A stretch of 64,000 nt of DNA from Macrostomum lignano. Lineage: Eukaryota. Position numbers and translations under genes: made by a program. Below the pieces are notes generated by a model, which did not search any database, was not told the DNA's origin, and saw nothing but the letters and a program-made list of their open reading frames with translations. The DNA lies in NCBI GenBank assembly GCA_002269645.1, contig NIVC01002320.1, forward strand, positions 62,001 to 126,000, given 5' to 3'. Shown here piece by piece: positions 767 to 52,242 of the stretch (position 1 is the stretch's first letter; every line of letters starts with the position of its first letter).

Positions 767-784
767 CTAACCCTAACCCTAACC
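767..784. repeat. Interstitial telomeric-type repeat (CTAACC)3
   Basis: ctaaccctaaccctaacc seen directly. Confidence 0.9.
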
Positions 785-2710
785 AATGAATTCTGAGAGT
801 TAAGTTCTTTTTGACAGAGAAAATTTCGATTGAGTCCAGTTTCACGGAGTATTCTGATGGTTTTCGGTTTCACGGAGAGGATTTCTTTTTCGTGGAGAGA
901 ATCTAGATGTATTTCTGTTTTACGGAGACGATTTTGATGGATGTCAGTTTCACTCAGAGGATTTCCATGGAGCCCAGTTTCACGGAGAGGATTTCTGTTT
1001 CGCGGATTGGATTTCGAAAGGAGTCCAGTTTCACGGAGAGGGTTTCTGTTTCGCGGAGAGGATTTCTGTTTCGCGGAGAGGATTTCTGTTTCGCGGAGAG
1101 GATTTCTGTTTCGCGGAGAGGATTTCTGTTTCACGGAGGGATTTTGATGGATTTGGTATCTTCAGTCAGTCAGTAAAGAGAGTAAAGAGAAGAGTGAAAA
1201 GAGAAGAGAGAAGAGATTATAGAAAAGAGAGTAGAGATGAGAGAGGACAGATTAGACATGACAGATGGGAGAGAAGAGGGGAGTAAGGCGGGAACGAAGA
1301 GGGAGAGAAAAGAAAAGAGGAGAGAGGAGATGAGAGTGAAGATATGAGATAGCAGAGGGAGACAGGAGAGATGAGAGGAGAGAGAAGAGAGGAGCTGAGA
1401 GTAGAGGAGAAAGAAATAGTGAGATGAGGCATGAGGGATGAGAGATGAGAGAGGAGAGAAGAGAGGAGAGAGGAGAAAACAGGGGATAAAGGAGACAGGA
1501 GAGAAAGACGAAAGACGAGGGAGAAGAGATAAATAAGGTGGTAGAGATGAGAGACGTGAGAGGAGAGAAAAGAGAAGAGAGGAGACAGAAGAATCTGAGT
1601 CTGGACAATGGCAGTCAGTTTTTGCGAACAGGGAAAACAAGATATGGTTTTATGGCTTTACAGAGGATTTGGAGATGATTTGGAAGATGGGATTCAAGTC
1701 ATGGAATTTGAGCTGATGGATTTCAGGGAATGGAATTCCGGTGATGGGAGTTCTTCCCCTTTCTCCTCCAGAGGAGGAGTTGGCCTCGTCCTCCTAATAC
1801 TAAAACTGACGCGATGTTTGTCTGTCTGTATGTATGTATGTAGTAAGTGAACTCCTACAATTCTGCCAAGTCAGCGTTGAAACTTATATGGGAAAACTGC
1901 AAATTTTCCGGAGCAGGCTTTAGGCTATTTTAATTTTTAATTTTCACATTTTAACATCCCTAAAAAAGCAGAAAACTGCTTTTTTAACCCCCAATAACCT
2001 TCTTTGGCCACTCTGCCTGGGGCTGCAGCCAGTTTGTAAAAATAGCCACCCCAACCTCCGCCCGCGGGCCGCTGTGTATTGAGGGGTGGTGGGTGCGCGT
2101 GTTCTGCGTTCAATGCAAATAAAACCCCCGCGTGTTGGGGGTTAAGTTCAATTTAATGATTCACCCAGACTGGGGGGTTGGGCTTGGGCTGAGTGTACAT
2201 AGCAGTTGTACAGTGTAAACAGATATACTGTGTCGAGATTCAATTGGTTTTATTATTGGCGCCTTTTTTATATAGGCAGCCTATTGCGAGCTTCTCTAGC
2301 AAGCAGTCGGGAAATCGGTAAATTTCAAACGCTAACTGTTCCTCGAGTTTTAAACTTTGAGAGGAGAAACTTATATTGCTGGAAAGATCTTGCAATGCTG
2401 AGTTCGGGGATATAAGTTGTTTGCTTTAAATATGAAAAGAAAAAGCACAGCATTTAAAAAACTATTTCCATACTTTTAACTTTCTGCAAAAATTATACTC
2501 AGTTTTGCGAGACGTAATAGATAAAGTTGGGGGAAGGGTTCAACTTCTCCCTGCTGCTGTGTATTGGAGGGTTGATTTAGATTGCACAATGTTTTTGTTA
2601 ACTTTAACTGAGACTGATACTGACTGACTGTGAAATCGGTTGCGCAATGAATTGATTCAATTAGTTCAATATTTTTATCAGTGCCTTTTAACACGAAGCT
2701 GTGCGTAGTT

Positions 2711-2746
2711 CTAACCCTAACCCTAACCCTAACCCTAACCCTAACC
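2711..2746. repeat. Interstitial telomeric-type repeat (CTAACC)6
   Basis: Six exact hexamers at the position equivalent to 767-784 in the second unit. Confidence 0.95.
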
Positions 2747-3776
2747 AATGAATCCGGAGAGTTGAGTTGTTTGACGGAAAAAATTCGATTGAGTCCAGTT
2801 TAGCGGAGACGATTTCAATGTTTTAATTTTGACGGAGAGGATTTCTGTTTCGTGGAGAGGATTTCAATGGTGTTCAGTTTCACGGAGTGGATTTCGATGA
2901 TGTTCAGCTTCACGGAGAGGATTTCTGTTTCGCGGAGATAATTAATGATTGATTTCTGTTTTATGGAGACGATTTTGATGGATTTAAGTTTCAAGGAGAT
3001 AATTTCGAAGGAGTCCAGTTTCACTGAGAGGATTTCGAAGGAGTCCAGTTTCACGGAGAGAATTTCGATGGTTTTCAGTTGCACGGACAGGATTTCTGCT
3101 TCGCGGAGAAGATCTTGATAGATTTGGCATCTTCAATCAGTCAGAGAAGAGAGTAAAGAGAAGAATGAAAAGAGAAGAGAGATGAGATGATAGAAAACAG
3201 AGTAGAAATGAGTGGAGAAATTAGACATGACAGATGGGAGAAAAGAGGGGAGTAAGGCGGGAACGAAGGAGAGAGAAGAGAAGAGGAGAGAGGAGATGAA
3301 GGGAGAGGATATGAGAGAGGAGATATGAGATAGCAGAGAGGAGACAGGAGAGAGAAGAAAGGAGGGATAAGAGCGTACAGAGGCAATAGAAGAGAGGAAA
3401 GAGAGGAGAGAGGTGAGAGGTGAGAGGAGAGAGATGAAAGATCAGAGATCAGAGATGTAAGAGAAGAAAGTAGTGAGGAGAAAGAAGAGGGTAAAGATGA
3501 GAGTGCAGAGAGGAGAGAAACGTGAGGAGACAGGTGGTAGAAAGGAGTGTAAAAACAGCAGATAAGAAAGGGGAGGGTGAGAGTGAGAGCATATAGGGAA
3601 GTGTAAAAGGGGAGCAGAGGAGAGAGAATAGATAAGTGAGTAGAGAAGAGATATGAGAGAGGAGAGAAAAGGGGAGAGATAAGATAGAAGATAGGAGAGT
3701 AGACAGGAGAGGGTACAGACGAAAGACGAGGGAGAAGAGATAAATAAGGTAGTAGAGATAAATAAGAGAGTAGGGG

Positions 3777-3992
3777 TGTAGTGAGTTGCAAGTGTACTTG
3801 TATGCGCCAGTCGCTAGAGCGGGGTGGGGGTTGCTATTGTACAGCATGTACGTGCTTTTCACCCACCCCTGTCTCTATCTTTTATACCCAGTTATGTAAC
3901 AATCGTTGTATCGTATTTAACCTGCGTATCGATCTAATAAACGCCAAGAGGCTTCGTCAACTCTCAGTTGTATCTCTCTGCCTTAGTCTACA
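3777..3992 (+). repeat. 5' LTR (216 bp)
   Basis: TGTAG...CTACA terminal inverted repeat, an internal AATAAA, and a PBS 2 nt downstream. Only one copy is present, so the 5' boundary rests on the TIR. Confidence 0.75.
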
Positions 3993-3994
3993 AC

Positions 3995-4008
3995 TGGTAG
4001 CAGAGCAA
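3995..4008 (+). promoter_or_regulatory. Primer-binding site for animal initiator tRNA-Met
   Basis: TGGTAGCAGAGCAA is complementary to the 3' end of invertebrate tRNA-iMet (...UUGCUCUGCUACCA). Confidence 0.85.
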
Positions 4009-4019
4009 ATTATTCTAGA

Positions 4020-4829
4020 ATGGCTGAGAAAGGTTTGACCGCCAGTGCAGCGCTGCCCAGAGTTTTCAGTACCGGCAACTTTAAGGAATGGCTGCAGCGT
4101 TTCAATGTATGCGCAAAAGTCAACAAGTGGGACACGTGCAAAGCGGAGCGACTGGCCACATTTTTGGATGGCGAGGCTCTCGTCGTTTATTTGGAACTGT
4201 CGGCAGGAGATCAGGCAGACTACGACAAAGTAGTCCAGGCATTGGATGATGCATTCCACCCGAACCGCGAGCACTTCGCCGTCATGGAGGCGTTCAAATC
4301 AAGGAAGATTTTGTCGAATGAGACTCCACGCATGTATCTTTACGAGTTAAAGAAGATGCTCAAAAGCTCCTCCGTGGACAACAAAGATGCTCAAGAGGCT
4401 CTGCTGTTCCATCAGTTCGTCTGTGGCCTTCCCGAATCCGTGAGCTGGCAGATTCGCGCGGACTCCAGCGTTAAGACCTCAGAGCAAGCGCTTCAAAAGG
4501 CCCAGCTACTGATGCAGCACAGCTCGCCAAGAATCCCAGCAGCAGCGGTGCAACCTCAGTCGAGCCAATCCAGCGAAGTTCAGGAGCTGCGGGACACTGT
4601 GCAGAGTCTGGAGGCATCGGTGAGCACCCTGAGTTCCCAGCTGCAGCAGCTGGCAGCCTGTGGAGTGAGGACGAGCAGCACAACGAGACCGCAGCACCGT
4701 TCGAAGTCTGACATCATCTGCTACAACTGCCACAAGGCCGGCCACATTGCCAGAGATTGCTACAGCAGGCGACAGCCGGGAAACGCCAGAGGCTGGGGTG
4801 TGCGGGCCCGCAACCCCGGCCAGCAGTAA
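4020..4829 (+). CDS. gag: Gypsy Gag with CCHC zinc knuckle
   Basis: 269-aa ORF with CYNCHKAGHIARDC and an N-terminal WLQRF...W...LATFL.GEAL capsid-like segment. Confidence 0.92.
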   Translation: MAEKGLTASAALPRVFSTGNFKEWLQRFNVCAKVNKWDTCKAERLATFLDGEALVVYLELSAGDQADYDKVVQALDDAFHPNREHFAVMEAFKSRKILSNETPRMYLYELKKMLKSSSVDNKDAQEALLFHQFVCGLPESVSWQIRADSSVKTSEQALQKAQLLMQHSSPRIPAAAVQPQSSQSSEVQELRDTVQSLEASVSTLSSQLQQLAACGVRTSSTTRPQHRSKSDIICYNCHKAGHIARDCYSRRQPGNARGWGVRARNPGQQ

Positions 4830-4839
4830 CTGCGGGCCC
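4778..4839 (+). promoter_or_regulatory. Programmed -1 ribosomal frameshift signal (slippery heptamer plus H-type pseudoknot)
   Basis: G GGA AAC at 4778-4784 in the gag frame and a 6-nt spacer. Stem1 4791-4799/4813-4821, stem2 4804-4812/4831-4839. pol lies in the -1 frame. Confidence 0.85.
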
Positions 4840-7800
4840 AGCAGCAGCGGCTTCAAGGCCGGCGCTCACAGTCGGCGGGATCTTCGACGGATGCAGCGTC
4901 GCGCCCGACCGACTATCGCAGTGTGAGTGCAAGCTTGATGGCAGAAGTGTGAAGGCGCTGTTAGACACCGGAAGCCAGTGCTCACTAGTTGAGTCCAGCA
5001 TCCTGACAAAATCCCAGCTCAGACAGGCAACTGCAGCCAGAGTGCAACTTCATTCAGTGAACAAGCAGCCAATTAGCATAGAACGGCAAATCGAATTGCC
5101 ACTTACAGTCGGTGGAGTGACAGCCCGGCAATTGTTTTTCGTTGTGTCAGGTTTGGTCTGCCCTGTCATTGTTGGAGTCGACTTCATCGGCAAGCATAAT
5201 TTGCAACTGGACTTCACAGGATCTTCACAAGAAGCCGGCCAAGTCTGCAGCACCAGATTCCAGGCTGACACCGACGATCCAGTTGACATCGAAGACGCAC
5301 TCGTCCCCGAGTTCAGCTGTGAAGAGTTCGAGTTGCCGACTACCGACGACCCTGATGTACAACGGCTGCTGGTGGAGTTCAAAGACTTGTTCAAGAAAAA
5401 GCCGGGACTAACTCATCTGCAACAGCATCGAATTGTTCTCTCGGATGAAGTACCTGTCCGAGTGCCACCGCGCCGCATGCCTGTGCATTACCGGGAGAAG
5501 GTAGAGCAGCTGATTCAGGAACTGCTGGAGAACGACGTGATAGAGCTGAGCGAAAGTCCGTACGTGGCCCCACCGGTGTACGTGACAAAGAAGGATGGCA
5601 GTCTCCGCCTGACCATAGACTATCGAGAGATCAACAAGAAGACTATTCGCTCTGCACAGGGAATTCCGTTGATGGAGGAGGCAAGAGATCGAATCGCAGG
5701 CAGTTCAGTGTTCTCTGTGTTGGATCTCAATGGAGGCTATTTTCAAATTCCGATGGCGGAAGAAGACAAGCTAAAAACTGCTTTCTGTCCGGGACCAGGG
5801 ATGCCGCTGTACCAATTTAAGAGAATGCCCCAAGGTCTGTCGGGGGCCCAAGCACATTCTGCATGCTAATGTCAAAAGTTTTCAACGGCTGCGATTTCAT
5901 CTTCACGTTCTTCGATGACAGCCTGTGCTTCTCAAAGACCAAGTCGGATCATCTGCGGCAACTTCGAGAGACCTTCGAGCGATTTCGAGCAGCCGGACTG
6001 ACATTAAGAGGCTCCAAGTGCAAGATCGCGGTACCCGAAGTGACCTTTCTCGGCACACGGTATTCAAAGGATGGTGCCCAGCCCAGCCAGGAGAAGCTGG
6101 AGGCAATTCAGCAGTGGAGAGAGCCGAGGTCAGCCAAGGAGGTGCGTCAGTTCATCGGCCTGTGCAACCAATACCGACGCCATGTAGCCAACTTCGCTGC
6201 CATCGCCGCACCGCTGCACCATCTGACTGGCAAGGGCGTTCCATTTGACTGGACTTCGGAATGCCAGACGGCCTTCGACGAGCTCAAAAGGTGCCTAATT
6301 AGTCCTCCGATCCTGGTGAACCCGGATTTCACTAAGGAGTTCTCAGTCTTCACGGATGCCAGTGGCAGCGGAGTCGGTGCAATTCTGAAGCAAGGCGAGG
6401 CGGTGATCGAGTTCTCAAGCCGCGCATTCAATTCAGCTGAGAAGAAATACTCTGCAACAGAAAAGGAGTGCCTGGCCATCTTGCACGCATTCAAAGTTTT
6501 TCGCCACTATCTTCTCGGCAAGCATTTCACGGTGCACACGGATCACTGCCCGCTCACCTACATCGATTCACAGAGAGTTGACAGCTACGGCAGGCTAGGA
6601 CGATGGCGTCTGCTGCTTCAAGAGTTCGACTTCACCGTCAAGTACCGAAGAGGCGTTGAGAACTCAGATGCTGACGCGCTGTCCAGACTGCACGGCCAAG
6701 AAGTCGCAGCTACGCAGCTGACTCCGGAAATCGACACTGAAGAGCTCAAAACTGCGCAGCGACATGACCCGGAGCTCAGCCAGGTGATTCAGGCGATGGA
6801 CAAGGACGCAGAAATTGCACCCAGATGGCGAGCAGGACCACTGCAGCAACTCGGCAGAATCTGGAAGAAGCTAAAGCTGGATGATGACGGTGTTCTACTG
6901 CGCAAGTTCAATGACCCGGACGGCCTGCGGGAGGTTCCAGTGGTGCCAGCGCGGCTTCGACAACAGTTTTTGACCAACGCTCACGAAGGTCTGGGAGGTC
7001 ATTTCGGAGCCGAGAAATGCTACCGCACACTGAAACTGACCGCCTACTGGCCCGGCATGGCTGAAGACATCGTGCAACACTGCCAGAGTTGTTCTGTCTG
7101 TCAGGAGAAGAAAGCGGGCTCGCGGACCAGCGCGCCACTCGGAGAACTGCCAATCGGCTCGCCGTGGGATTCTGTGGCTATCGACATCGTCAAGGTGGCG
7201 CCATCATCGCGCGGCAACAAATACCTGCTGGTGGCTCAGGATCAGTTTTCCAAGTACCTGACGGCCGTGGCGATTCCTGACCAGACTGCTGAGACTACTG
7301 CTCGCGCCTTCCTCTCCATCTGCTCCCAGCCTGGACTTCCCCGAGTCATCCACTCCGATCAAGGACCGAATTTCGAGTCTCAGCTTTTTCAAGACACTCT
7401 GCGAGGCCTGGGAGTCACGAAGACAAGAACAACGGCTTACAATCCCAAAGGCAACGGATTAGCGGAGTCGGGCAACAAGTCAGTGCTGCAGTTACTCAGG
7501 TGTTTCACCGAGCGAGAGAGCGAGTGGGAGGACAAGCTGCCACTGATCCTGCTGTCCTACAATTCCCGGGTGCACTGCTCAACACAGCTGCCGCCACTGA
7601 AGGTGTTCACCGGGCGCGATCCGAGCCTGCCGGTCATCAGCCAGCAGTCCAGGCGATTCTATGACGTGCGCACCTACGCCGACAAGCTCGAGGGCGACCT
7701 GCTGCGAATTCGAGAGTTTGTCGAGGAGCATCTGGTGCAGGCGGCTGGCGAGCAAAAGAGCGGCTACGACAGGTCGACCGGGCAGCTGCGCATGTTCAGT

Positions 7801-8097
7801 CCTGGAGACGAGGTCCTGCTGCGCATCGAGCTGGCGCCTTACTGGGAGCCGGGCTGGCAGGTGCTGTCGCAGCGGGATCTGGTAGTCGAAATCCAAAAGA
7901 TCGAGAACGGCCGGACCCGCAGGGTGAGTGTGAATCGTCTGCGGCCGCGGATCCTGCCAGTCCCTGACGGAGAGCGCTTCCTGCAGCCGCCCTTTGCGCA
8001 CGCGGCGCACGGCGGCGATGAGGCGGACGAGGAGCCGCCCCCGAGACGCTACCCGGTGCGTAGGCGGATGCCGGTGGATCGCTATGTGGCCGGTTGA
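4778..8097 (+). CDS. pol: Gypsy Pol (protease, RT, RNase H, integrase) with one 1-nt frameshift at ~5847-5849
   Basis: LLDTGS protease; TIDYREIN, VLDLNGGY, MPQGL and FFDD in RT; FTDASG, EKECLA and TDH in RNase H; HHCC and D-D-E (AIDI, SDQG, AES) in integrase. Adding one C to the C run at 5847-5849 restores MPQGLSGAPSTFCMLM. Confidence 0.93.
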
Positions 8098-9400: not shown

Positions 9401-12400
9401 ATGGCGCAGCTCTTGGCGCTGTGCGCTCTGTGTGCAGCTCTTTGTGCTCTTGGAGGCGGTGAGTTGTCTGTCTGCCTTCAATGTCAGATATATTGTAAGC
9501 CTTCATCACTCATGTGAAGCCCCTGCTCTCTTACAGCGGCGAGCTCCAACAAGTTCGACATCACGACAACAAACATCGCGGCTTCCTGGCAGTCGTCAGA
9601 ATACTTCAACAGGTGCTTCAGAGACACGGCTGTTCTTGAGCAGTGGGATTACTTTCACACAACGGGCACCCCAGACTCTCATGGATACCAGTGGCTGCTC
9701 ATTAAGCTGTCCCGTGCAATCCGTGTGCAATCAGTCACTGTCTATGGCAGGGCAGCAGGTGAGTTGTCTTGTCCACTTCTGTCTCTTCCGCTTCACTTCT
9801 TTCTTACTTCTCTTCTCACTGCAGAGCCCAGCAGAGCAGAGAAGATCGAGATTCTGCTGAGTGACAGACTGCCACCGGGTCTGAATGCGAGCAATGGCAG
9901 TTGCTATGGGACTCTGTCCGGTAGCTTGAGCTCGCTCACTCAGTGCGGAGTCACCCAGCGTGAGCAGACTCAGACTCACAAGGTGGCTTGCAGCTACTCT
10001 GACTGCCCGAATGTAGGTTTATCTCCATCTACTCTGTTGTTGCTGAGTGCAAATTGGTGCAAATAGGTGCGATTAGGACGTGCAAATAGGTTCGAATAGG
10101 AGGTGCAAATAGGTGTGATAAGAAGGTGCAAATAGGTGAAAATAGGTGCAAATAGGTGCAAATAGGAGGTGCAAATAGGTGCAAATAGGTGCAAATAGGT
10201 GCAAAAAGGTGCAAATAGGTGCGATTAGGAGGTGCAAATAGGTGCAAATAGGTGAAAATAAATTCAAATAGGTGCAAATAGGTGCAAATGGGTGCAAATA
10301 GGTGCAAATAGGTGCAAATAGGTGCAAAATGGCGCAAATAGGTGCAAATAGGTGCAATTAGGCGCAAATAGGTGCAAATAGGTGCAAATAGGTGCAAATA
10401 GGTGCGATTAGGAGGTGCAAATAGGTGCGATTAGAAGGTGCAAATAGGTGCAAATAGGTGCGATTAGGAGGTGCAAATAGGTGCAAATAGGTGCAAATAA
10501 ATTGGTGCCAATAGCTGCAAAAAATGGGTAAATCACACGAAATTTCAGGTGACTGAGTACATCTTGCTAAGGAAGAACGTTCGAAACGAATCTGATAAGT
10601 ACATGAACTTTCAAGCTCTGGAAGTCGAAGAGGGTACGACTTTAGTTGATTAAAGCTTAATTATGCCTTTATAGGACATTGTTGACTTTAAACAGACTTT
10701 CTCTCTTTCAGCATCTCAGAATGCGCAGATTTATAGGTGTGAAGTGTCTGGCAGAAACCTCAGTAACTGCAGACTCAATGCTTTGCAAACTTTGAAAAAT
10801 GGCGACAGAGTTTATATGAAAGTCTGCCCACCGTGTCAGCTTCCGACAACTGATGCGGCATCTTGTCACATTGCTGCTCCAAGTGGCAATATCACACAGC
10901 TGAGAGTTGTGAGCTCACGGATGAATTTATTTCTTTTAAAATGATTTTCACGGACTATTTGACTAAATAATAGGAATAAGTGAAATGAGCAATGATGAAT
11001 GTTAACACTTTATTTTTTATACGATTGTAGCCAGTTTCTTAATGTTCTTTCACCATTTTCAGCATGGGCACCCAGACTCCAATTTAATTGTAATCTTCAC
11101 ATCGACTGCGGAAAGTCAAGGAGGAAACTTCACGTGCAGCTTTGATTGCTTGAGCGAGTTGCCTCAGTCAGCAACTGAACCAATCGGTTTCTTTGGTATG
11201 CAGCTTTTGTGTGTACTTTTTACCTCAGACAGGTGAATTCGTAAAGCAACCTTCTACTGTTCAAACTGTTGTAATCTAGGATATTGGTATTTTGCTAGCA
11301 GCCTACTATCAGGTGCAGTACAAATGACACCCTAAAAGCAGGTTGCAGTGCAAATGACACCCTAAAAGCAGGTTGCAGTGCAAATGACACCCTAAAAGCA
11401 GGTTGCAGTGCAAATGACACCCTAAAAGCAGGTTGCAGTGCAAATGACACCCTAAAAGCAGGTGCAGTACAAATGACACCCTAGCAGCAGGTGCAGTGCA
11501 ACTGGCACTCTAGCAGCAGGTGCAGTACAAATGGTACCCTAGCAGCAGGTGCAGTACAAATGACACCCCAGCAGCAGGTGCAGTACAAATGGCAGCCTAG
11601 CAGCAGGTGCAGTACAAATGACACCCTAGCAGCAGGTGCAGTACAAATGACACCCTAGCAGCAGGTGCAGTACAGATGGCTGCCTAGCAGCAGGTGCAGT
11701 ACAAATGACAGCCTAGCAGCAGGTGCAGTACAAATGGTACCCTAGCAGCAGGTGCAGTACAAATGACACCCTAGCAGCAGGTGCAGTACAAATGGCAGCC
11801 TAGCAGCAGGTGCAGTACAAATGACACCCTTAGCAGCAGGTGGGTCATTTCACGAGAGGGTCGCATCATTTTTTGAACTTTAAGCACTTGTAACTTCTGA
11901 ACCATAATAGGTAAACAAAGCTGCAAAAAGCAATCTGTGTCAAACTTCTAGTTCTATCTTTTTCACAAAGCTGCTTATGAATTCTAAAACAACTGAACAC
12001 ATAGCAGAGCGTCAACCGTCAGCATAGTTTATGCTCTGCTATGTGTTCAGCTGTTGTCCAGGTGCAGTGCAAACGGCTGAGCTCATTTTCTGTTGCAGAG
12101 GAGAAGCCCAGAAGTGTCAGCATTGAGCCCAGCAACGGGGTTCAGATTGGATCAAGGATATTTCTGGCTCCAGGCACGGAGTTTCACTTCAGCTTCATCA
12201 CAGAAGCTGCGTACCCAAGTCCCATCCATGCTTGTAGGCTGGTGAGAACTGCTAAACGGGAAACTACAGAAGATACTTCAGGTGTTCCACTGTATCCCTT
12301 TACAGAGGTGAGAAAATCCTGTGCAATCTTAATACTTTCATTTCCCATTCTTATCTCGTCCCATTAAATTATTTTTCAGAGATCCCTCACTGACGCCTCA

Positions 12401-15400
12401 GCCAACAAAAGCCATGTAATTACCAAGATCTCTGAGTACAGACTCAACATTAGCGCACACAATGCAGCTGAGAAAAAGATACAGTGCGTGTCGGCTGTCG
12501 GTGAAAGCAGTGGAAAATCGGTGAAATCAATTTCGCTGCCTGAGCTTGTAGGTAAGCAAAAATATTGGAGGGAGAGTACTGGCAGGTGATACCTGGAATT
12601 TCTCATATTAGATGAAGATGAGTTGTATTGAAATGATAAAAACTGCAGTTCCAAGCAAGCCAGAGTTTCTGCTACCGCCAATCACGGACTGGAAAGACGG
12701 CCACTCCGTCTCAGTTGCTGTCGACTCAACAACAGACAGCCCTGTTCCAACCAGCCACCGCTGCTTGCTGGAGACTCGAGACGGCAACAGAAGTCTCAAC
12801 GCTACTCAAGTGAGTCTTGCTTTGGTTTTATGCCGTCGTGATGTCGGTTTCGAAAACAAAAACTTTGGCAAAATATTGAATGCGTTTCATCAAATGTCAA
12901 ATATTTGACAAACGTCATGGGCTGCTGAAGTGATTCATTCGGTGTTCTAAGCATGAGCATGTTTACTTTCTTTGAATAAATACGAAATTTCTAAATTGCT
13001 ACAAATTTCGAGTTCTCTTAAAACATTTCCTGTAGTAACTCTGAATCAGTCCATGAGTGTGTGTACAGGACTATCCTTCTCGCATGGTAGAGACTTCTCA
13101 AATCGAAATTCCAGGTAACAAATAAAAGCAGTAAATTCGAGTTGGATGTTGATAGACACTGGGGCAGCCCAGCATCTCTGGTCTGTTTGGTAAATCAATC
13201 TGGGCTGATCCAGACGTGGACTCGACATCGGCTACCGAAGGTGCTCTGTGAGTCTCTGATGCCATGACTTTCTTCACAAGCCTATTACTGCATTTGAAGA
13301 TTAAATCACGATTGCATTTTCGAATTCAGACAAGGCCGAAGGGCTGGCCATCCGTATTTCGTCTGGAGACCTGGTGAGTGATGAAGAAGCCAGCTTCTCA
13401 GTGACTGCATCTGACTCAGGATACCCAGCGGCTCTGCACCAGTGCAGAATCGAGAGCAAGAGCCTCGGAGAAGACAAGGTATGAGGCTGATGTTATTGCT
13501 CATTCAGAGTTCCCAGCCAGCAGTTCAATGCTACAATTTCGGTTGACCATTCCGCAGACTGCAGAGTCAGACGGCTCAACTCAGTGGAGATTCACGCCTC
13601 AGCGAGGGCACAACGGTGAAAGAATCAGATGCGATGTGGTGCAGAAACTGAGTGGCTCTTTGATATTCAGTCAGACTGTCAACAGCTCTAATCTGGATGT
13701 TAACTGTGAGGCTCATGCTTTAATCTGCTGCATGCTGTGATCCCGATCGATACAGTAGGGCTGCTTGCACTTCAGACAAGGCAACTGTCACGTGGCCCAG
13801 AAATATCGCTCCGAAAAAGGAAGGAGAGACTCTGTCATTCGTTGTGCTCGCAGACGGCAACCCAGAGCCCAGCAGTCAGTGCTGGCTGCAGCTGGTTTCT
13901 GGCTCACAGGTGAGTCTTTGATTTGGGATGATGCTGCTTTCTGGCTCACAGGTGAGTCTTTGATTTGGGAGTGATGCTGGTTTCTGGCTCACAGGTGAGT
14001 CTCTGATTTGGGAGTTATGCTGCAGTCTCGGTGTTTCATAATAATCACTATTCTCGTTCCAGGTAGACCTGCATAAGCTGAAGCATTCCATGTTTGAAAG
14101 CACCTTCAACGTCACTGTTGATAGGTCAATGAACCGAGCCAATTTGAGCTGTGTTTTGACTCAACCTGGACTTCCATCTTCAACGGAGCAGAGCTTCACC
14201 CAATTGATCACAGTATTTTGTAAGTTTACAGAATTCATTTTCATAGGGTTCATAAAGAGGTATACAATTTGTAAATGAGTGCGTATCATTTGAGCCAATG
14301 GAAACATTTCCTGTCGCTTCGGAGGCTCTGACTTGAAGCACTTCTTAACTCGTAGAGTGAAAAATAATATCGACCCAATCATCCTACAGATCAGCCTCAG
14401 CCTCCACTCACCATCGACTTGGCTCAGACTGTCTACGAAGGCACCGACGTCACCTTCACGGTGCGGTCGGGCGCTGGAAACCCCAATGTCACCCACAGAT
14501 GCCACGTGTACAACGGAGAAATTGTGAGCGCAATATTTGCTCATCAAATCACCTGAATTGCAGCTTTGGTTTAACACAGAGTTGATCATTCCAGGAAGTT
14601 CAAAACAGCATGAAAATCGAATCGGAGTACTTGACAATGGTGAACTATGCACCCAACAGTCATGACACATTTGTGAGCTGCACGGCCGAGCAGATGCACC
14701 GCTCTGATGTTGTGTTCACCAGCAGCATCAGAAGGAACATCACCGTCAATTGTGAGAAGTCAAATGCTATTTTATTAGCATGCAGCCTGCCATTGACTTG
14801 AAAACCGGAGTATCCACTTTAACTTCAGACTTTGCGCGCAACTCCATGGACATCAGTCCGAGAGAAGGAGTTGTTGCTGGAGATCGAGTCGAAGTGACAC
14901 TCAGCTCTTCTGGTGGCCGGCCTGCCGTCAATCAGCATGAGTGTTCGCTTGGAGGTTCTGAGCTGACAATGAAAAATGTATGCTTTTGAATTGACTGAAA
15001 CCTTCTTCAGGCATCCTAAATGATCAATTTGGGAATTTTTCTACAGGTAACAAGGCGTCCCACCGAAGTGAAGTTCACGTTTCGTGCATCGAAAGAGCAC
15101 CACGGCAAGGTGCTCGCCTGCAAATTCGTACAGGATGAGCGACTGATTGAGTGGAAGAGAGAGAAACTCAGCGTCCTCTGTAAGTACAGTTTGAGTTGTT
15201 TATTGGTGTGAAAGTATGGGGGTATTTTCTACTTTGAAAAGTAACTCGTTAAGCCACACTGATGTAAATGTGCACTGCTTTTTCGCACCTGTAGACAAAG
15301 CGGATTTCGACTCTGAGGTACGAATCATAAATAGAACAGTCAGGTGGAACACGACAGTCCAGTTCAGCATCTCCTACTCTGATGTGGGAAACCCGTCCGC

Positions 15401-17235
15401 CAAGCACTTCTGCAGCATCGGCTCTCGGCCACTCACCGATGCTGAGGTGCGAAAATACTGACCAACATTTTTGTGCCCGCTTTATGTAAGTAACAAGGTA
15501 ATTAGAGGTTGTAATGGAAAACATCTGAAAATACATTTCAGTCGGTTTCGGCATCACAAATATTGTTGCGTTGGAAGTTCAAGGCTCAAGTCGGAGACAA
15601 CGGTCAGAAGATCGTCTGCCAGGTGGTGCAAGATGATCAGCATGGCGGCCGAGTCTTTAACCAAACAGTTGCCAGCCAGACTCTGGATGTGCTCTGTAAA
15701 GATTTTGTTTATCAGTTGTATTTATTGCTTCAATCGAGCTATTTATATTTATTCCAATATATTGAACCACTTTGACTGTCACAACATTGTTTTCTTAATC
15801 TCTCTATCTTTTCAGACCCAGTCAGCTACTCAGGATTTCTATCCCAGCCACCGTCGGTGACGGAGGGCGATCCCTTGGTTATTTCTTTCTTCTCAACTGG
15901 AGGAAACCCCGAGCCTCGTCACCGATGCTGGCTGCAGACACCTGAAGGTCGGATGGACGCAGTCGCTCTAACAGAGGCGAGGACAGGTGTGGACCTCTTG
16001 ACGAACTTCAGTGTGACTTCCGTAAAGCAGATGAATGGAGGATCTGTGTCTTGCCGCGTCTCTCAGATGGGCCTCGAGGACCTGGACAATGAGTTCTCCC
16101 GCAAAATTAATGTTTTCTGTGAGTTCTCTGTCGCGACTGCTCCAATTTTTATAACAATACAAAATCTAATAAAAAAACGTTCGTTTTCCGTTCCAGTCCG
16201 ATCGGAGGTGGATCTGACCGGCTCAAAGATTTCAGGATCCACAGTGGTTGTCAGCATCAATGTGACGGATGGAAACCCGACACCGCTGGTGAACTGCTCG
16301 CTGCTCTCGAGCTCTGAAACTCGATATGTGGGTTCTCAGTGTGCACAGTTGCTCCGCTTCTATTTGCATTGAGTAGCTTTAATGCAGCCGAACCCGTCAT
16401 TTTAGGAGGTGTCCAGGAAGGACTCGACAATGCTGAGAGTCGGACTGCATGAGATAGAAGTCGATCTGCTTTTAAGAGAGCAGCCTCAGTCAGCCAACGT
16501 CACGTGTTCTGTGAAGCAAGACTATGCGGGTTTCAAAAGCAGCAGCCTTGTCTTTTTGGCACTCAAAGCTGACGAGAGTTTTCAAGCTAGCGACCAAGAA
16601 AGTGAGCAGTTCTGTGTAGTCCAGCTTAGCTGCATTACTAAACTATTGTCTTTTAAGTTAATCGTATTGTAATGTCTTATCATATTGCTACTATTGTATT
16701 ATCGCTACAAAAACTGATCAATGCAGACCATGGGAGCCTCAGCTGGAATCAAATGTTTCAAATTCTCTGTCTGTGCGCAGTGGTTGCCGTCGCTAGCTTT
16801 CTTTCTCTGCCTGCCACAGTCTACGTCTGGAGGCGAACTGCATCGCCTCGGTTGGGAATTCAGCGGCAGCACGGAGCAGCCACAGACAGGAGACCAGCTG
16901 ACGTACCTCTGGTCCCTGTGACTGCTGCTGAGCGAGATCCCAATGTAATATTGCTTTTCAGAATTGCTTGCTCATTTTGCTGTTTAATCTGTGTGTGAGG
17001 CTGACAATCTGCGGCACTTTTCAGACCGTCTACTACTATGAGGAGAACCCGGCGCTTCCGGATCGGCCTCCAAGCGTTGAGGAGACGGACTCAAATGTGA
17101 GTCTACTGTCTGAATCTTTGCCAGATGCTCTCAGTGCATGCTCACTGCAGGATTCAGTTCCGTTTATTGCAGATGGCGAACTGTTCTGAGGAGGAGCAGA
17201 CGGCTCAGGGAGCCATCGAATTCTACGTGCAGTGA
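9401..17235 (+). CDS. Receptor copy 1: signal peptide, F-type-lectin/F5-8C-like domain, 10 Ig-like domains, TM and Tyr/Pro tail (~1308 aa, 25 exons)
   Basis: Exons 9401-9458, 9537-9758, 9825-10016, 10712-10908, 11063-11195, 12099-12307, 12380-12551, 12649-12809, 13115-13247, 13330-13478, 13558-13705, 13776-13909, 14063-14219, 14390-14523, 14595-14751, 14829-14977, 15047-15179, 15295-15446, 15542-15695, 15816-16118, 16197-16327, 16406-16601, 16727-16944, 17025-17096, 17173-17235. All are GT-AG and phase-compatible, totalling 3927 nt with no internal stop. Signal MAQLLALCALCAALCALGG; TM MFQILCLCAVVAVASFLSLPATVYVW-RR. The exon 3/4 junction has an alternative phase-0 pair. Confidence 0.85.
10051..10520. 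repeat. 10-nt satellite (AAATAGGTGC)n in intron 3 of copy 1
   Basis: Direct tandem repeats; equivalent array at ~22921-23365 in copy 2; unexpanded in copy 3. Confidence 0.95.
11310..11843. repeat. 29/30-nt minisatellite in intron 5 of copy 1
   Basis: Unit CAGGTGCAGTACAAATGACACCCTAGCAG; also at ~24162-24546 and ~35847-36433. Confidence 0.95.
13891..14020 (+). repeat. 42/43-nt repeat of the exon-12 splice donor, 3 units (copy 1)
   Basis: TTTCTGGCTCACAG|GTGAGT with GT at 13910, 13952 and 13995. Confidence 0.95.
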
Positions 17236-19347: not shown

Positions 19348-19863
19348 AGCCCTCAGGGCGGTCCGGGACCGCTGCTCTGACTGGGGAACAGGAAGCCCGG
19401 CAGACCAATGACGTCCTTGGGACGAGTCCAGAGGTCTATCGGAGAAAGATTGGTAGGGTACGCAGGGCAGTTGAAGAGATGTTCGACTGTTTCGTCGGCT
19501 GCGTTGCACCTAGCGCAGATAGGGGCGATGTTAGGATCCAGCTTGGCCTTGTAGGTCGCAAGGAGCGTGCAGTGCCCCGACCGAAGCTGGGAGAGCGTCG
19601 TGTGAAAGGTCCTGCTCAGCAGGCACTCGGAAATGTCGATGGCGGGAGCCGGCTGATTGACAATGTTATTGGTGCGGTTGCTGAGGTAGGTCTGGACGCA
19701 GGCGGAATGGATAACCTTGATGAGCTTGGTTGGCGGAAGAGGATCGGCAGAGATGGCGTTAATGACAGGTTGATGATTGATGAGGAAGCTGGTGGCATGA
19801 GAGCGGAGAGAATTGCGGAGCTGACGATGGGCAGCCGGTTCGGTGGTGATGTATTTGGGAAGT
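19288..19863 (-). mobile_element. 5'-truncated non-LTR retrotransposon (ORF2 C-terminus) with (CA)n tail and target-site duplication
   Basis: LSQLRSGHC...CARC...ETVEHLFNCP...DLWTRP. (GT)n tail at 19303-19344. TSD TGATGT[G/A]TTTGGGAAG at 19288 and 19847. Confidence 0.88.
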
Positions 19864-20299
19864 CGTGTTTTAGATCGTTGGCTCGTTACTCGTATATTTG
19901 TTGAAATAAAGCAAGAGCTTGTCAATCGTTTCGCGCTTGTTCCGATCTCTCTTGCCGCTCAAACGCAGTTTATTAATTGTGGGCCTGTAAGCCAAGCATT
20001 TACCCATAAACTAATACGTGGCTGCTCTCAGCCACACATCACTTTCCAATTGCTAGTAGGACAAAAAACCAAAGACGGAACTAAATGACTAACAAATATC
20101 AGATTAGCAGCAGGCAGACAGTAATTCAAGGACTACTTAAGTAGATAGATGCAACACTCGAAATCTATAGCAATTTTTGTCCGATACATATAGATAACTT
20201 CAGTCGTCCTTTTTTAGGAATGCTACTTCGCTTAAGGAATGCAAGAAACAAGAATATAATTGCAAACATTTGCATTCTTTACAATTGATATTGTTGACG

Positions 20300-21654
20300 A
20301 ATATTATGACGAAAATATTTTATTTATTTTATTCACGTTTCGCTGTAACTTTCAGCATCGTCAGGTGACAATATTTGTAATAATTTGAAGGTAATAAAAT
20401 GAAAGTACGGGCCAAGAGTTTAAAAACGAGGTTAAAGTAGCCGTAGAATAGTCAAAAAAATTCTAAGAATAGTACTAGCCCCCTTCCTGTCAGTTGTACA
20501 TTCAGGGTAGGCTTTAACTGTTTGATGTACAGAGCAGGTATTTAGTTTGTGGTGGTGTTGAATCCGATCAATAATTTTAAACTTTTGATCATGTTTGATG
20601 TCGGCACACGCGTTGCACATTAGCAGATGGTCATGAATCGCGCTAGCCTTCTTGCGGTGTTCCTCGATCCTAGTGTACAGGTGTCGATCAGTCTTACCGA
20701 TGTACGACTGGCTCTGCTCAGCAGGGCAAACAAATTGATAGACGACACCAGCACACCGGGTGGAGGGTACTTTGCTTTTTAGGCTTGTCACAAAATTGGC
20801 CACCTTTTGAGTAGTGAAGATAACATCAATGCGTGTATCGAGACAGTCACGGCAGATATCAGTCAGGCTTTTTTTAAATTTAGTACTTGGCATTCCAATG
20901 TACGGAATACTGATGGTTGGTTTTCTTTCGGTAGAGGTAGAGTAAGTAACATTCTGGGGTCGTACTATAAAGCTGTCGTAGCGTAAGTTCGATCGTATTC
21001 GAATGCGTCGGAACTTTTACACTGCGGAGATGGGAGCTAAGAATGATCTTATCTTACGATGGCTTTATAGAACGGGCCCTCTGTTCTTTGGTAACTTTCT
21101 TATTGATGAAGGCATTAATCTCTGAGTTGATCAGGTCGTTTGGGTACTGTTTTTTTGTCAGGATCTTTTTGATCTTAGTTAATTCCTGGTGTAGGTTAGA
21201 CCAGTTGCTGCAAATGTTGTAGGCACGATGCAACATGCCTCGAATCAAACTCAGCTCCCAGCTTTTCGGGCACAGCGCCTGGAAATTTAGCAGCACTCCA
21301 GTAAACGTAGGTTTTCTGTAGACCGTTGTCTCCCAACGATTTGCATTACGGGTCACCATAGTATCAAGGAAACTCAAACAGTCATTTCCCGTTTCCGCAG
21401 TGAACTTGATGTTCTTATGAGTGTTGTTGAGCATCTTAAGAAAATTGTCACTCGAATTTCGGTCAAAAATCGCAAAATTATCGTCAACGTAACGGTAGTA
21501 CACCGTTGGTTCTGTTCTTCATGGGAAGTGTTGGATTGCGAAGGCCAAAGCGTAGTGCGTGTTTCTCAACGATGGTTAGCTTCCGGTTAGATAAATTTGT
21601 CACAGCGATCGGAGCATTGTTATGAGCCAAAAGATTGTTTAGCTTCTTTTCATG
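20300..21654 (-). mobile_element. Degenerate, internally deleted Penelope-like element (RT C-terminus plus GIY-YIG endonuclease)
   Basis: YYRYVDDNFAIF, IKFTAE, LSFLD and VYRKPT (21054-21503); VVYQFVC...SYIGKTDRHLYTRIEEH (20432-20893). The N-terminal segment is fused directly to RT motif C. Confidence 0.9.
20333..20368 (-). ncRNA. Degenerate hammerhead-ribozyme motif at the PLE 3' end
   Basis: Minus strand tcac-CTGACGA-t-gctg-aaagtta-cagc-GAAA-c-gtga. Core boxes and stems I and II are present; stem III and the NUH triplet are collapsed. Confidence 0.55.
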
Positions 21655-22268: not shown

Positions 22269-25200
22269 ATGCGGCGCAGCTCTTGGCGCTGTGCGCTCTG
22301 TGTGCAGCTCTTTGTGCTCTTGGAGGCGGTGAGTTGTCTGTCTGCCCTCAATACCAGATATATTGTAAGCCTTCATCACTCATGTGAAAGCCCCTGCTCT
22401 CCTACAGAGGCAAACTCCATCAAGTTCAACATCACGACAACAAACATCGCGGCTTCCTGGCAGTCGTCGGAATTCGGCAACAGGTGCTTCAGAGACACGG
22501 CTGTTCTTGAGCAGTGGGATTACTTTCACACAACGGACACCCCAGACTCTCATGGATACCAGTGGCTGCTCATTAAGCTGTCCCGTGCAATCCGTGTGCA
22601 ATCAGTCACTGTCTATGGCAGGGCATCAGGTGAGTTGTCTTGTCCACTTCTGTCTCTTCCGCTTCACTTCTTTCTTACTTCTCTTCTCACTGCAGAGCCC
22701 AGCAGAGCACAGAACATCGAGATTCTGCTGAGTGACAGACTGCCATCGGGTCTGAATGCGAGTGGCGATAGTTGCTATGGGACTCTGTCCGGTAGCTTGA
22801 GCTCGCTCACTCAGTGCGGAGTCACCCAGCGTGAGCAGACTCAGACTCACAAGGTGGCCTGCAGCTACTCTGACTGCCCGAATGTGGGTTTATCTCCATC
22901 TACTCTGTTGTTGCTGAGTGCAAATAGGTGCAAATAGGTGCGATTAGGACGTGCAAATAGGTGCGATTAGGAGGTGCAAATAGGTGCGATTAGGAGGTGC
23001 AAATAGGTGAAAATAGGTGCAAATAGGTGCAAATAGGAGGTGCAAATAGGTGCGAATAGGTGAAAATAAATGCAAATAGGTGCAAATAGGTGCAAATAGG
23101 TGCAAATGGGTGCAAATAGGTACAAATTGGTGAAAATAGGTGCAAATAGGTGCAAATATGTGCAAATAGGTGCAAATAGGCGCAAATAGGTGCAAATAGG
23201 TGCAAATAGGCGCAAATAGGTGCAAATAGGTGCAAATAGGTGCGATTAGGAGGTGCAAATAGGTGCGATTAGGAGGTGCAAATAGGTGCGATTAGAAGGT
23301 GCAAATAGGTGCAAATAGGTGCGATTAGGAGGTGCAAATAGGTGCAAATAAATTGGTGCAAATAGCTGCAAAAAATGGGTAAATCACACGAAATTTCAGG
23401 TGACTGAGTACATCTTGCTAAGGAAGAACGTTCGAAACGAATCTGATAAGTACATGAACTTTCAAGCTCTGGAAGTCGAAGAGGGTACGACTTTAGTTGA
23501 TTAAAGCTTAATTATGCCTTTATAGGACATTGTTGATTTGAAACAGACTTTCTCTCTTTCAGCATCTCAGAATGCGCAGATTTATAGGTGTGAAGTGTCT
23601 GGCAGAAACCTCAGTAACTGCAGACTCAATGCTTTGCAAACTTTGAAAAATGGCGACAGAGTTTATATGAAAGTCTGCCCACCGTGTCAGCTTCCGACAA
23701 CTGATGCGGCATCTTGTCACATTGCTGCTCCAAGTGGCAATATCACACAGCTGAGAGTTGTGAGCTCACGGATGAATTTATTTCTTTTAAAATGATTTTC
23801 ACGGACTATTTGACTAACTAATAGGAATAAGTGGAATGAGAAATTATGAATGGTAAAAAAATCGTGTTTTTATACGATTTTAGCCAGTTTCTTAAAGTTC
23901 TTTCACCATTTTCAGCATGGGCACCCAGACTCCAATTTAATTGTAATTTTCACATCGACTGCGGAAAGTCAAGGAGGAAACTTCACGTGCAGCTTTAATT
24001 GCTTGAGCGAGTTGCCTCAGTCAGCAACTGAACCAATCGGTTTCTTTGGTATGCAGCTTTTGTGTGTACTTTTTACCTTGACAGGTGAATTCGTAAAGCA
24101 ACCTTCTACTGTTCAAACTGTTGTAATCTAGGATATTGGTATTTTGCTAGCAGCCTACTATCAGGTGCAGTACAAATGACACCCTAAAAGCAGGTTGCAG
24201 TGCAAATGACACCCTAAAAGCAGGTTGCAGTGCAAATGACACCCTAAAAGCAGGTGCAGTACAAATGACACCCTAGCAGCAGGTGCAGTACAAATGGTAC
24301 CCTAGCAGCAGGTGCAGTACAAATGACACCCTAGCAGCAGGTGCAGTACAAATGACACCCTAGCAGCAGGTGCAGTACAAATGGTACCCTAGCAGCAGGT
24401 GCAGTACAAATGACACCCTAGCAGCAGGTGCAGTACAAATGACACCCTAGCAGCAGGTGCAGTACAAATGACACCCTAGCAGCAGGTGCAGTACAAAGGA
24501 CAGCCTAGCAGCAGGTGCAGTACAAATGACACCCTTAGCAGCAGGTGGGTCATTCCACGAGACAGTCCCATAATGTTTTTGAACTTTAAGCACTTGTAAC
24601 TTCTGAGCCATAATAGATAAACAAAGCTGCAAAAAGCAATCTGTGTCAAACTTCTAGTTCTACATTTTTCACAAAGCTGCTTATGAATTCTAAAACAACT
24701 GAACACATAGCAGAGCGTCAACCGTCAGCATAGTTTATGCTCTGCTATGTGTTCAGCTGTTGTCCAGGTGCAGTGCAAACGGCTGAGCTCATTTTCTGTT
24801 GCAGAGGAGAAGCCCAGAAGTGTCAGCATTGAGCCTAGCAACGGCGTTCAGCTTGGATCAAGGATATTTCTGGCTCCAGGCACGGAGTTTCACTTCAGCT
24901 TCATCACAGAAGCTGCGTACCCAAGTCCCATCCATGCTTGTAGGCTGGTGAGAACTGCTAAACGGGAAACTACAGAAGATACTTCAGGTGTTCTACTGCA
25001 TCCCGTCAGAGAGGTGAGAAAATCCTGTGCAATCTTACTACCTCCATTCCCCATTCTGATCTTCTCTCATCAAATGCTTTTTCAGAGATCCCTCACTGAC
25101 GCATCATCGAACAAAAGCCATGCAATTACCAAGATCTCAGAGTACAGACTCAACATTACAGCACACATGCAAGCAGCTGGGCAAAAGATACAGTGCGTAT

Positions 25201-47182: not shown

Positions 47183-47264
47183 GACTTGTTGAACTGGATG
47201 ATGCTGGGCCTGAGTCTGAGTCTCTGCGAGTTTCCTTTGCTTTCTGAGTCTCAGTCACTGCTTG

Positions 47265-51334: not shown

Positions 51335-52242
<908 letters not shown>

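Follow-up and report, generated by a model that had tools for sequence, protein, structure and literature searches.

The gene described here is copy 1 of three tandem paralogs and lies at 9401–17235 in a 64,000-nucleotide (nt) window of the free-living flatworm Macrostomum lignano (GenBank assembly GCA_002269645.1, contig NIVC01002320.1, positions 62,001 to 126,000 of the forward strand). The window is this whole stretch of DNA, and positions are counted from its first letter. We consider it likely that copy 1 encodes a type I receptor with a lectin-like head and ten C2-set-like immunoglobulin (Ig) domains (D1–D10), in which the canonical disulfide linking strand B to strand F is exchanged for an intra-domain cross-strand bond between strands C and F. 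Together, the B–F disulfide and the Trp of strand C are the best conserved hallmark of the Ig fold. In the flatworm family the strand-B Cys is replaced by Val, Ile, Leu or Phe and the core Trp of strand C by Cys, while the strand-F Cys is retained. The two Cys of each domain would then bond into a single intra-sheet C–F disulfide that staples strands C and F, leaving the two sheets joined by packing alone. The bigger strand-B residue and perhaps also a conserved His two positions before the new Cys (Cys-2) would fill the space vacated by the Trp. The receptor itself would be a fast-evolving, tandemly duplicated molecule for adhesion or recognition.

Two conserved Cys columns in the Ig-like repeats

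A sequence-only reading, made by a model from the letters and their open reading frames (ORFs), had described 10712–16601 as ten Ig-like domains whose first disulfide Cys apparently moved from strand B to strand C. This segment is the central part of the larger gene 9401–17235. On the forward strand it encodes ten repeats of 94–127 amino acids (aa) each in 19 exons, all of which are bordered by an AG acceptor and a GT donor and follow a strict 1-0-1 phase pattern. Nine of the ten repeats are interrupted by a phase-0 intron, located 6–24 residues past the first conserved Cys, and D9 is uninterrupted. The exon organization that had been claimed for most domains is thus confirmed, and all motif strings cited in that reading were found in the spliced translation.

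D2–D10 contain precisely two Cys each, and all 18 Cys in these 924 residues fall within two alignment columns. Since the repeats share so little sequence (~20% identity, pairwise range 14–33%), this placement is not due to chance. The first column, termed the family Cys in the following, corresponds to the Trp of strand C and holds Cys in all ten domains; the motifs from D2 to D10 are HACRL, HRCLL, HQCRI, SQCWL, HRCHV, HECSL, HFCSI, HRCWL and VNCSL. The second column is the canonical Cys of strand F, which is kept in all of D2–D10 as had been proposed (IQCV, LVCL, IRCD, LSCV, VSCT, LACK, IVCQ, VSCR, VTCS). The canonical Cys of strand B is present in none of the nine domains. Its position is taken by F, V, V, V, V, L, I, F and I, respectively, in motifs such as SFVVLADGNP, TFTVRSGAGNP and QFSISYSDVGNP; the reported absence of a strand-B Cys from D2–D10 therefore holds for every one of them. 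The consensus of the repeats reads G-N-P-x-x-x-H-x-C-x-L, then N-G-x-x-[ILV]-x-C-x-V-x-Q. In D2, strand C is separated from strand E by ~25 additional aa.

Two details of the sequence-only reading have to be modified. The motif H-x-C at the Trp position is found in seven of the nine domains and is missing from D5 (SQC) and D10 (VNC). The count of ten Ig-like domains stands for D2–D10 and holds in part for D1, which is divergent, gives a weak hidden Markov model (HMM) match and yields a low-confidence structural model. D1 carries Cys in both family columns and five additional ones, one of which adjoins the strand-B position.

Fold of the repeats and position of the first Cys

The classification of the repeats as Ig-like and C2-set-like is supported. 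The whole protein matches the Pfam family C2-set_2 (PF08205) with 33.6 bits at a cut-off of 21 (E = 4e-8). A profile built from the ten domains was run against all sequences in the PDB; apart from two weak chance matches it found Ig domains, namely those of B7-H3, SYG-2, ICAM-1, CD22, CADM4 and nectin-4. An Fn3, CUB or cadherin identity of the repeats found no support in either the Pfam scan or the PDB profile search. A Pfam scan of 11 domain sequences gave no Fn3 or CUB match, the only related hit being fn3_PAP in one of them (E = 0.15).

The position of the family Cys can be derived from the same profile alignments. In SYG-2, the third domain (TIACSVTGGNPPPDVFWYH) is aligned to the profile segment 'sfsvsstagnPepthrCslq' and there is no gap between the Trp and the family Cys. 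Here the strand-B Cys corresponds to Val, the Trp to the family Cys and the strand-F Cys to the strand-F Cys of the repeats. The second domain of ICAM-1 maps onto strands B and F in the same way; its strand C has no Trp and a Val stands opposite the family Cys. The match to the IgC domain of B7-H3 ends two residues short of the family Cys, and the strand-B substitution alone is visible in it. The spacing is consistent with this assignment. From the Pro of the G-x-P turn to the Cys the distance is 6 in seven of the ten domains and 7 in the other three, and the distance from Pro to Trp in SYG-2 is 6. Furthermore, the residue at Cys+2 is L, I or V throughout, whereas the one at Cys+1 varies and is polar (R, L, R, W, H, S, S, W and S in D2–D10). 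Because Cys+2 is invariably hydrophobic, the family Cys is located on the buried face of the strand.

In a competing assignment, the first Cys would be located one residue before the Trp position and would point outward, as a surface Cys for inter-domain or inter-chain links, and the strand-F Cys would remain unpaired in the core. Such a placement results from a pairwise alignment of D5 with the second domain of nectin-4, in which the Trp of SQCWL is paired with the Trp of nectin-4 by means of a one-residue gap; a Trp directly after the Cys is also found in D9. However, this Trp occurs in only two of the nine domains and is replaced by R, L, R, H, S, S and S elsewhere. Since position Cys+1 is variable and polar, the Trp in D5 and D9 is presumably incidental and outward-facing. 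In addition, the Cys coincides with the Trp in the ungapped SYG-2 match of this segment, the distance from the G-x-P turn to the Cys is the canonical distance from this turn to the Trp, and the hydrophobic Cys+2 places the Cys on the buried face. Residue periodicity, spacing and the alignments of the profile all spoke for the Trp position, the nectin-4-based placement was set aside, and we regard an outward-facing Cys as highly improbable.

For structure prediction, an alignment was built from the single-exon domain D9, substrings of matching UniRef entries and trimmed separate exon halves. The AlphaFold2 (AF2) model of D9 is a seven-stranded sandwich with a predicted local distance difference test (pLDDT) score of 75.7 and a predicted template modelling score (pTM) of 0.62. 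Its strands comprise residues 4–8, 19–26, 33–40, 46–53, 60–67, 76–83 and 90–96. Phe24, at the position of the strand-B Cys, is located in strand 19–26, and Cys37 and Cys79 occupy central positions in strands C and F, respectively. Strands C and F are the most confident blocks of the model (pLDDT 80–84), and their limits show the register that is expected of directly opposed residues (33+83 = 40+76 = 37+79). A Foldseek search of the PDB with the D9 model retrieved antibody V and VHH domains, PD-1 and VCAM-1 (TMq 0.57–0.70, best E 3.5e-4).

A further comparison was made with domain 2 of CD4, using a CD4 sequence that is identical to the PDB chains over residues 98–178. When the family profile is aligned to it with hhalign, Leu118 is the counterpart of the strand-B Val and Cys130 that of the family Cys, at a probability of 9.7% over 27 columns. 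Leu118 is the residue that replaces the lost strand-B Cys in CD4 (PMC4354306).

Since the PDB profile alignment, the spacing, the residue periodicity and the AF2 model agree, we place the family Cys on strand C. A different sandwich such as Fn3 or CUB, or a first Cys that aligns to strand B, would have contradicted the sequence-only reading. Instead, the C2-set_2 score, the seven-stranded model and the Foldseek matches indicate an Ig sandwich, and the profile alignments, the D9 model and the hhalign comparison with CD4 put the first Cys on strand C at the Trp position.

The predicted C–F disulfide

In the IgStrand numbering, the anchor residues of strands G, F, C and C' are paired through their backbones in an unbroken row, to which both the Trp of strand C (3550) and the Cys of strand F (8550) belong, and 3550 is hydrogen-bonded to its neighbour on C' (PMC12051499). 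Because 3550 makes its hydrogen bonds to C' in an antiparallel sheet, 3550 and 8550 should constitute a non-hydrogen-bonded pair. It would follow that this site is of the type that accommodates cross-strand disulfides. A C–F disulfide is predicted for the repeats because, within the GFC sheet, the Trp position is the direct cross-strand neighbour of the strand-F Cys and the two residues face the core. A site of this type is described for CD4 domain 2, where Cys130 on strand C and Cys159 on strand F are bonded in solved structures (e.g. PDB 1cdh and 1cdy) and the strand-B Cys is lost (PMC4354306). The bond in the flatworm repeats is most likely formed and mainly structural. It would enclose 36–44 residues per domain and 60 in D2, and unfolding would be expected to release more chain than with a B–F bond.

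Alternatively, the Cys pair together with the conserved His could bind a metal ion (H-x-C...C), or the two Cys could remain free thiols. H-x-C is present in the majority of copy 1 domains (7/9) and in most paralogs, and clusters of Cys and His are typical metal ligands, as is generally known and also stated in PMC5766482. However, the protein is predicted to be extracellular and to pass through the secretory pathway, where paired Cys are normally oxidized. D5 and D10 lack the His yet keep both Cys, and a His at Cys-2 would be located one rung along the sheet and not opposite the Cys pair. Moreover, three ligands within the core of a β-sheet would make an unusual site. The probability of metal binding or of free thiols is therefore considered very small.

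More weight has to be given to the possibility that the C–F disulfides are strained switches of the -RHStaple type, which extracellular oxidoreductases would reduce or force would open or isomerize, so that the stalk would change in length, stiffness or oligomeric state. The arrangement matches that of CD4 domain 2, whose bond is described as a metastable cross-strand disulfide, such bonds being generally metastable by their geometry (PMC4354306). The pair formed by the Trp position and the strand-F Cys is a putative non-hydrogen-bonded site, and in most domains the conserved His at Cys-2 lies on the same face. In addition, the M. lignano paralog A0A1I8HRG2, which is described below, has a Cys triad on strands B, C and F in each detected domain, and this triad is formally isomerizable like that on strands B, F and G of titin (PMC5766482). 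On the other hand, both Cys face the core on interior strands, and access of a reductase would need partial unfolding because of this burial. Nine or ten such bonds in series also resemble a fixed structural solution more than a regulated site. Hence, a role as switches appears unlikely, and the predominantly structural C–F bond is preferred.

Several observations weigh against our interpretation. Single domains score below the Pfam gathering thresholds, the best E being 0.035. The D9 model is of moderate confidence and derives from a shallow alignment of 20 rows of paralogous repeats, and the register deduced from its strand limits is suggestive at most. The pairwise alignment of D5 with nectin-4 described above pairs Trp with Trp and puts the Cys one position earlier and outward. 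The conserved His at Cys-2 could point to chemistry beyond a plain disulfide. Furthermore, one of the tandem paralogs, copy 2, looks disabled from its sequence. Finally, the ratio of nonsynonymous to synonymous substitution rates (dN/dS) among the three copies is 0.66–0.88 at a synonymous divergence (dS) of ~0.053, therefore recent constraint is weak, or purifying and diversifying selection are mixed.

Distribution of the family and a paralog with three Cys

A word-indexed search with the full protein found only three UniRef entries, all annotated as 'Ig-like domain-containing proteins' of M. lignano, two of which cover about half and one about a third of the query. With the domain profile, the same type of search gave short M. 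lignano fragments only. When 1.84 billion representative proteins were searched exhaustively with HMMER and the domain profile, only 229 of them matched at E ≤ 1e-3. The best 150 of the 229 were re-aligned and the three key columns were read; the counts below refer to these 150. The combination of a non-Cys residue on strand B with Cys on strands C and F occurs in ~17 distinct clusters at 50% identity, and all named ones are from M. lignano. Among 40 complete domains, 37 have this pattern, three have all three Cys and none has a single Cys. The pattern was found in no named taxon outside Macrostomum. The suggestion of a distinct Ig subtype is thus borne out, as GNPxxxHxC...CxVxQ recurs in the ~17 diverged clusters.

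A further occurrence was found in a metagenome. Positions 266–787 of an 805-bp contig of ERZ925700 (k127_46441) read GNPPPTHECKL...TVMCSVKQ, with read-through at the intron positions of the window gene. The contig is presumably genomic and derives from a related flatworm that was present in the environmental sample.

All of the three-Cys domains belong to one M. lignano paralog encoded outside the window, A0A1I8HRG2 (P0035). This type I membrane protein has repeats that read, for example, VNFTCTS...QHRCEL...SIECSVQQ. From its sequence, A0A1I8HRG2 could be an evolutionary intermediate or possess an isomerization-competent triad. A more far-reaching proposal would combine these features: a strained C–F staple with a neighbouring His throughout the family, a stalk of 8–10 domains as a redox- or force-gated extensible element, and A0A1I8HRG2 as a living intermediate in which the disulfide hops between B–F and C–F. 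We regard this combination as rather doubtful, even more so than a role of the single bonds as switches. If it were true, A0A1I8HRG2 would show a core disulfide relocating in evolution without passing through an unpaired state.

The best matches outside the flatworms are large bacterial 'immunoglobulin domain-containing' repeat proteins (P0012/P0172, Clostridia, WP_118702055; P0011; P0021; P0033; and others). Their repeats have no strand-B Cys, keep Y-Q-W on strand C and possess one Cys on strand F. This Cys is conserved but unpaired, since it is the sole Cys of the repeat. Other profile matches are vertebrate CD22-like and ICAM5-like proteins with canonical features. A three-Cys domain in a nephrin-like protein of Pecten (GGNPLATLSWEC) was examined and rejected because it has a different arrangement, with the Trp at the canonical position and the extra Cys two residues later. 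Nephrin-like proteins of Ylistrum, a mollusc like Pecten, and proteins of the echinoderm Amphiura were flagged with an extra Cys by the HMM column calls alone. A literature search retrieved nothing on Ig-like proteins of M. lignano.

Receptor architecture

Between its ATG at 9401 and its TGA at 17233–17235, the spliced reading frame of copy 1 is uninterrupted. The domain order is signal peptide, N-terminal jelly-roll-like domain, D1–D10, transmembrane (TM) segment and cytoplasmic tail (Table 1). Strong hydrophobic peaks are confined to residues 4–22 and 1228–1250, and the ectodomain contains 26 N-x-S/T sequons. Since the signal peptide and the TM segment are the only strong hydrophobic segments and the sequons lie in the ectodomain, the product is, as predicted from its sequence, a type I membrane glycoprotein. 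The motifs YYYEENP and EFYVQ are present in the short, Tyr-containing cytoplasmic tail. Most likely, copy 1 codes for a receptor that serves adhesion or recognition at the cell surface and carries its lectin-like head on an Ig-like stalk.

Table 1. Coordinates of the receptor genes in the window and of the coding segments of copy 1.
Feature	Position	Strand	Exons	Key residues and remarks
Copy 1, complete gene model	9401–17235	+	26	1335 aa; GT-AG at every intron
Signal-peptide exon	9401–9458	+	9401–9458	MAQLLALCALCAALCALGG; ends in phase 1
N-terminal domain	9537–10633	+	9537–9758, 9825–10012, 10549–10633	~165 aa
D1	10712–11195	+	10712–10908, 11063–11195	divergent Cys-rich Ig-like repeat; 7 Cys
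D2	12099–12551	+	12099–12307, 12380–12551	B Phe 12194–12196; C-strand Cys 12233–12235; F-strand Cys 12485–12487
D3	12649–13247	+	12649–12809, 13115–13247	B Val; C-strand Cys 12762–12764; F-strand Cys 13184–13186
D4	13330–13705	+	13330–13478, 13558–13705	B Val; C-strand Cys 13443–13445; F-strand Cys 13630–13632
D5	13776–14219	+	13776–13909, 14063–14219	B Val; C-strand Cys 13880–13882; F-strand Cys 14150–14152
D6	14390–14751	+	14390–14523, 14595–14751	B Val; C-strand Cys 14500–14502; F-strand Cys 14679–14681
D7	14829–15179	+	14829–14977, 15047–15179	B Leu; C-strand Cys 14942–14944; F-strand Cys 15119–15121
D8	15295–15695	+	15295–15446, 15542–15695	B Ile; C-strand Cys 15411–15413; F-strand Cys 15617–15619
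D9	15816–16118	+	one 303-nt exon	B Phe 15887–15889; C-strand Cys 15926–15928; F-strand Cys 16052–16054; domain modelled by AF2
D10	16197–16601	+	16197–16327, 16406–16601	B Ile; C-strand Cys 16295–16297; F-strand Cys 16505–16507
TM exon and tail exons	16727–17235	+	TM 16727–16944; tail 17025–17096, 17173–17235 (stop)	TM exon MFQILCLCAVVAVASFLSLPATVYVW-RR
Copy 2, tandem paralog	22269–30554	+	26, as in copy 1	
Copy 3, tandem paralog	34384–~42001	+	no D8 and D9 exons	frame open: signal peptide, N-terminal domain, D1–D7, D10

The N-terminal domain is tentatively assigned to the galactose-binding-like jelly rolls (F5/8C, F-type lectin or CBM32-like). Its match to the Pfam family F5_F8_type_C has an E of 0.021 and a score of 15.4 bits, below the cut-off of 28.2. 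The AF2 model is of low confidence (pLDDT 58), and the best Foldseek matches of this model are fucolectin (1k12), an F-lectin (3cqo), discoidin I/II, CBM32 and APC10, with E of at least 3.8e-3. In its weak Pfam match and in these Foldseek matches the domain resembles F-type lectins, discoidins, F5/8 type C domains and CBM32, but it differs from them in its sub-threshold scores and the low pLDDT of its model. A W-W-L-x-x-x-L and an L-L-R-K...L-E-V-E pattern are present in the domain, which is also found in more diverged M. lignano paralogs that bear C–F repeats. In the PDB sequence search, matches to integrases were dismissed as spurious (E ~0.6) and nothing else matched.

Tandem copies and their surroundings

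The three tandem paralogs in the window share ~92–97% nt identity. Copy 2 carries a 2-nt insertion right after the ATG and a 34-nt deletion in exon 16 (27907–28029), which removes the strand-F Cys of D6, and the acceptor of its TM exon is changed from AG to TG at 30035–30036. It is these lesions that make the copy look disabled; they may also be the result of an assembly error. The N-terminal half of copy 3 matches UniRef A0A1I8H8M2, and its TM/tail exon from 41700 onward (VGGVVGATFGTLLALGLVGAAILLLL-RARR...) is unrelated to the corresponding exons of copy 1. Copies 1 and 3 thus combine a common ectodomain with unrelated TM and cytoplasmic exons (YYYEENP...EFYVQ at 16727–17235 versus ...KHYLYPVR at 41700–42001). 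In this respect they recall paired receptors, whose signalling tails differ. No change of a Cys codon was seen among the three copies at ~2 expected by chance, a difference that is uninformative. Tandem duplication, domain loss, alternative TM/tail exons and a dN/dS of ~0.7–0.9 are typical of fast-evolving surface receptors.

The introns of the three genes contain minisatellites that include splice-site sequences. A 42–43-bp minisatellite is located at 13891–14022 in copy 1 (3 units), at 26604–27334 in copy 2 (~17 units) and at 38498–39829 in copy 3 (~31 units). Its unit includes the final ~19 nt of the first exon of D5 and the GTGAGT donor (GCTGGTTTCTGGCTCACAG/GTGAGTCT...). Because exon end and donor are both part of the unit, the 5' splice site of D5 is tandemly repeated. 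Splicing from a downstream unit would add 42–43 nt per unit and would usually shift the frame. The intron between D1 and D2 holds a 29-bp minisatellite (CAGGTGCAGTACAAATGACACCCTAGCAG) in all three copies (11310–11842, 24162–24547 and 35847–36434), and copies 1 and 2 have a related 10-bp repeat (GTGCAAATAG, ~43 units) in the intron that precedes exon 4 (10047–10499 and 22918–23372). Both the 29-bp and the 10-bp units contain AGGTG-like splice-site motifs.

Probable retroelements flank copy 1. Just upstream, on the forward strand at 4020–8097, is a probable long terminal repeat (LTR) retrotransposon with three long overlapping or adjacent ORFs of 269, 370 and 744 aa, which show features of a gag-like zinc knuckle, of a protease and reverse transcriptase and of an integrase. 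Between copies 1 and 2, ORF fragments on the reverse strand (19353–21503) resemble, by eye, the reverse transcriptase and endonuclease of a non-LTR retroelement. A 552-aa ORF on the reverse strand (56331–57989) is located in an island of 65% G+C; Q, P, S and E are abundant in its product, which has poly-Q and poly-P runs. Positions 1–3800 and 46400–56300 are rich in minisatellites with periods of 5–51 bp, e.g. period 23 at 53107–54364 and period 12/16 at 51335–52242, and a strong GC skew is seen in 1–4000.

Significance

A C–F disulfide in an Ig domain is already known from CD4 domain 2. What appears to be new is that an expanded invertebrate family has independently fixed the C–F pattern in all of its repeats and includes a candidate intermediate with three Cys. 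Domain 2 of CD4, the one well-studied case of a C–F bond, is a single, recently evolved domain in which the bond is functionally labile. The flatworm family would have fixed the C–F solution independently in dozens of domains of an expanded receptor family, and would thereby offer natural replicates for testing whether reliance on an intra-sheet staple is compatible with an Ig sandwich. The sequence set also reveals candidate compensating changes, namely the larger residue on strand B and the His at Cys-2, and A0A1I8HRG2, with its three Cys, is a possible intermediate stage in the relocation of a core disulfide during evolution. Because single domains score below the gathering thresholds, the current Pfam models under-detect this Ig subtype and such variants. 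The function of the receptor is testable, as Macrostomum lignano is a laboratory model amenable to RNA interference and transgenesis.

Comparison with known Ig systems

The best sequence relatives of the flatworm repeats are the PF08205 domains of adhesion receptors, i.e. nectins, nephrin/SYG-2, B7-H3, ICAM and CD22. Both groups have the same domain length and the G-x-P turn past strand B; strand F is preceded by N-G and contains C-x-V/A-x-Q/N, and the domains end in L-x-V-x-Y. Like the predicted flatworm receptor, these proteins are type I membrane proteins with long chains of domains. In contrast to the flatworm repeats, PF08205 domains possess the full canonical set of Cys on strand B, Trp on strand C and Cys on strand F.

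The V-set domains of Siglecs and MAG have a conserved intra-sheet disulfide between strands B and E. The flatworm disulfide is likewise predicted to lie within one sheet and not to bridge the two, but it would connect strands C and F, and the Siglec/MAG case is confined to the N-terminal, sialic-acid-binding V-set domain. The term intra-sheet disulfide occurs in PMC9875244 and PMC2116432.

In the I-band Ig domains of titin, a Cys triad on strands B, F and G gives rise to non-canonical disulfides, and isomerization has been shown experimentally (PMC5766482). The position of the disulfide sets the chain length that is freed on unfolding, and the third Cys permits the isomerization (PMC5766482). 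A0A1I8HRG2 resembles these domains in having a Cys triad, but on strands B, C and F. Titin also differs in being cytoplasmic and in having its third Cys on strand G, and for the flatworm receptor isomerization is conjectured by analogy.

The closest parallel to the predicted bond is domain 2 of human CD4, a C2-set Ig domain, and the statement of the sequence-only reading that this domain has an atypical, redox-labile C–F disulfide is correct according to PMC4354306. CD4 and the flatworm repeats share an aliphatic residue at the position of the strand-B Cys (Leu118 in CD4), a Cys on strand C and the retained Cys on strand F, and the flatworm strand-F motif C-x-V-x-Q is like CTVLQ in CD4. Because of the low hhalign probability, we interpret the similarity as convergent analogy and not as close homology. 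CD4 was absent from the PDB matches of the domain profile at E ≤ 1, and these sequence comparisons do not indicate common descent with CD4 or LAG-3. In CD4, the C–F arrangement was gained in primates and muroid rodents only (PMC4354306). It is restricted there to one domain of a vertebrate coreceptor, whereas the flatworm pattern is fixed in every repeat of a multi-gene family, which in addition has the conserved His at Cys-2 and a paralog with three Cys. This paralog suggests that the flatworm family reached the C–F pattern by gain of the new Cys and subsequent loss of the old one, whereas CD4 lost its strand-B Cys first.

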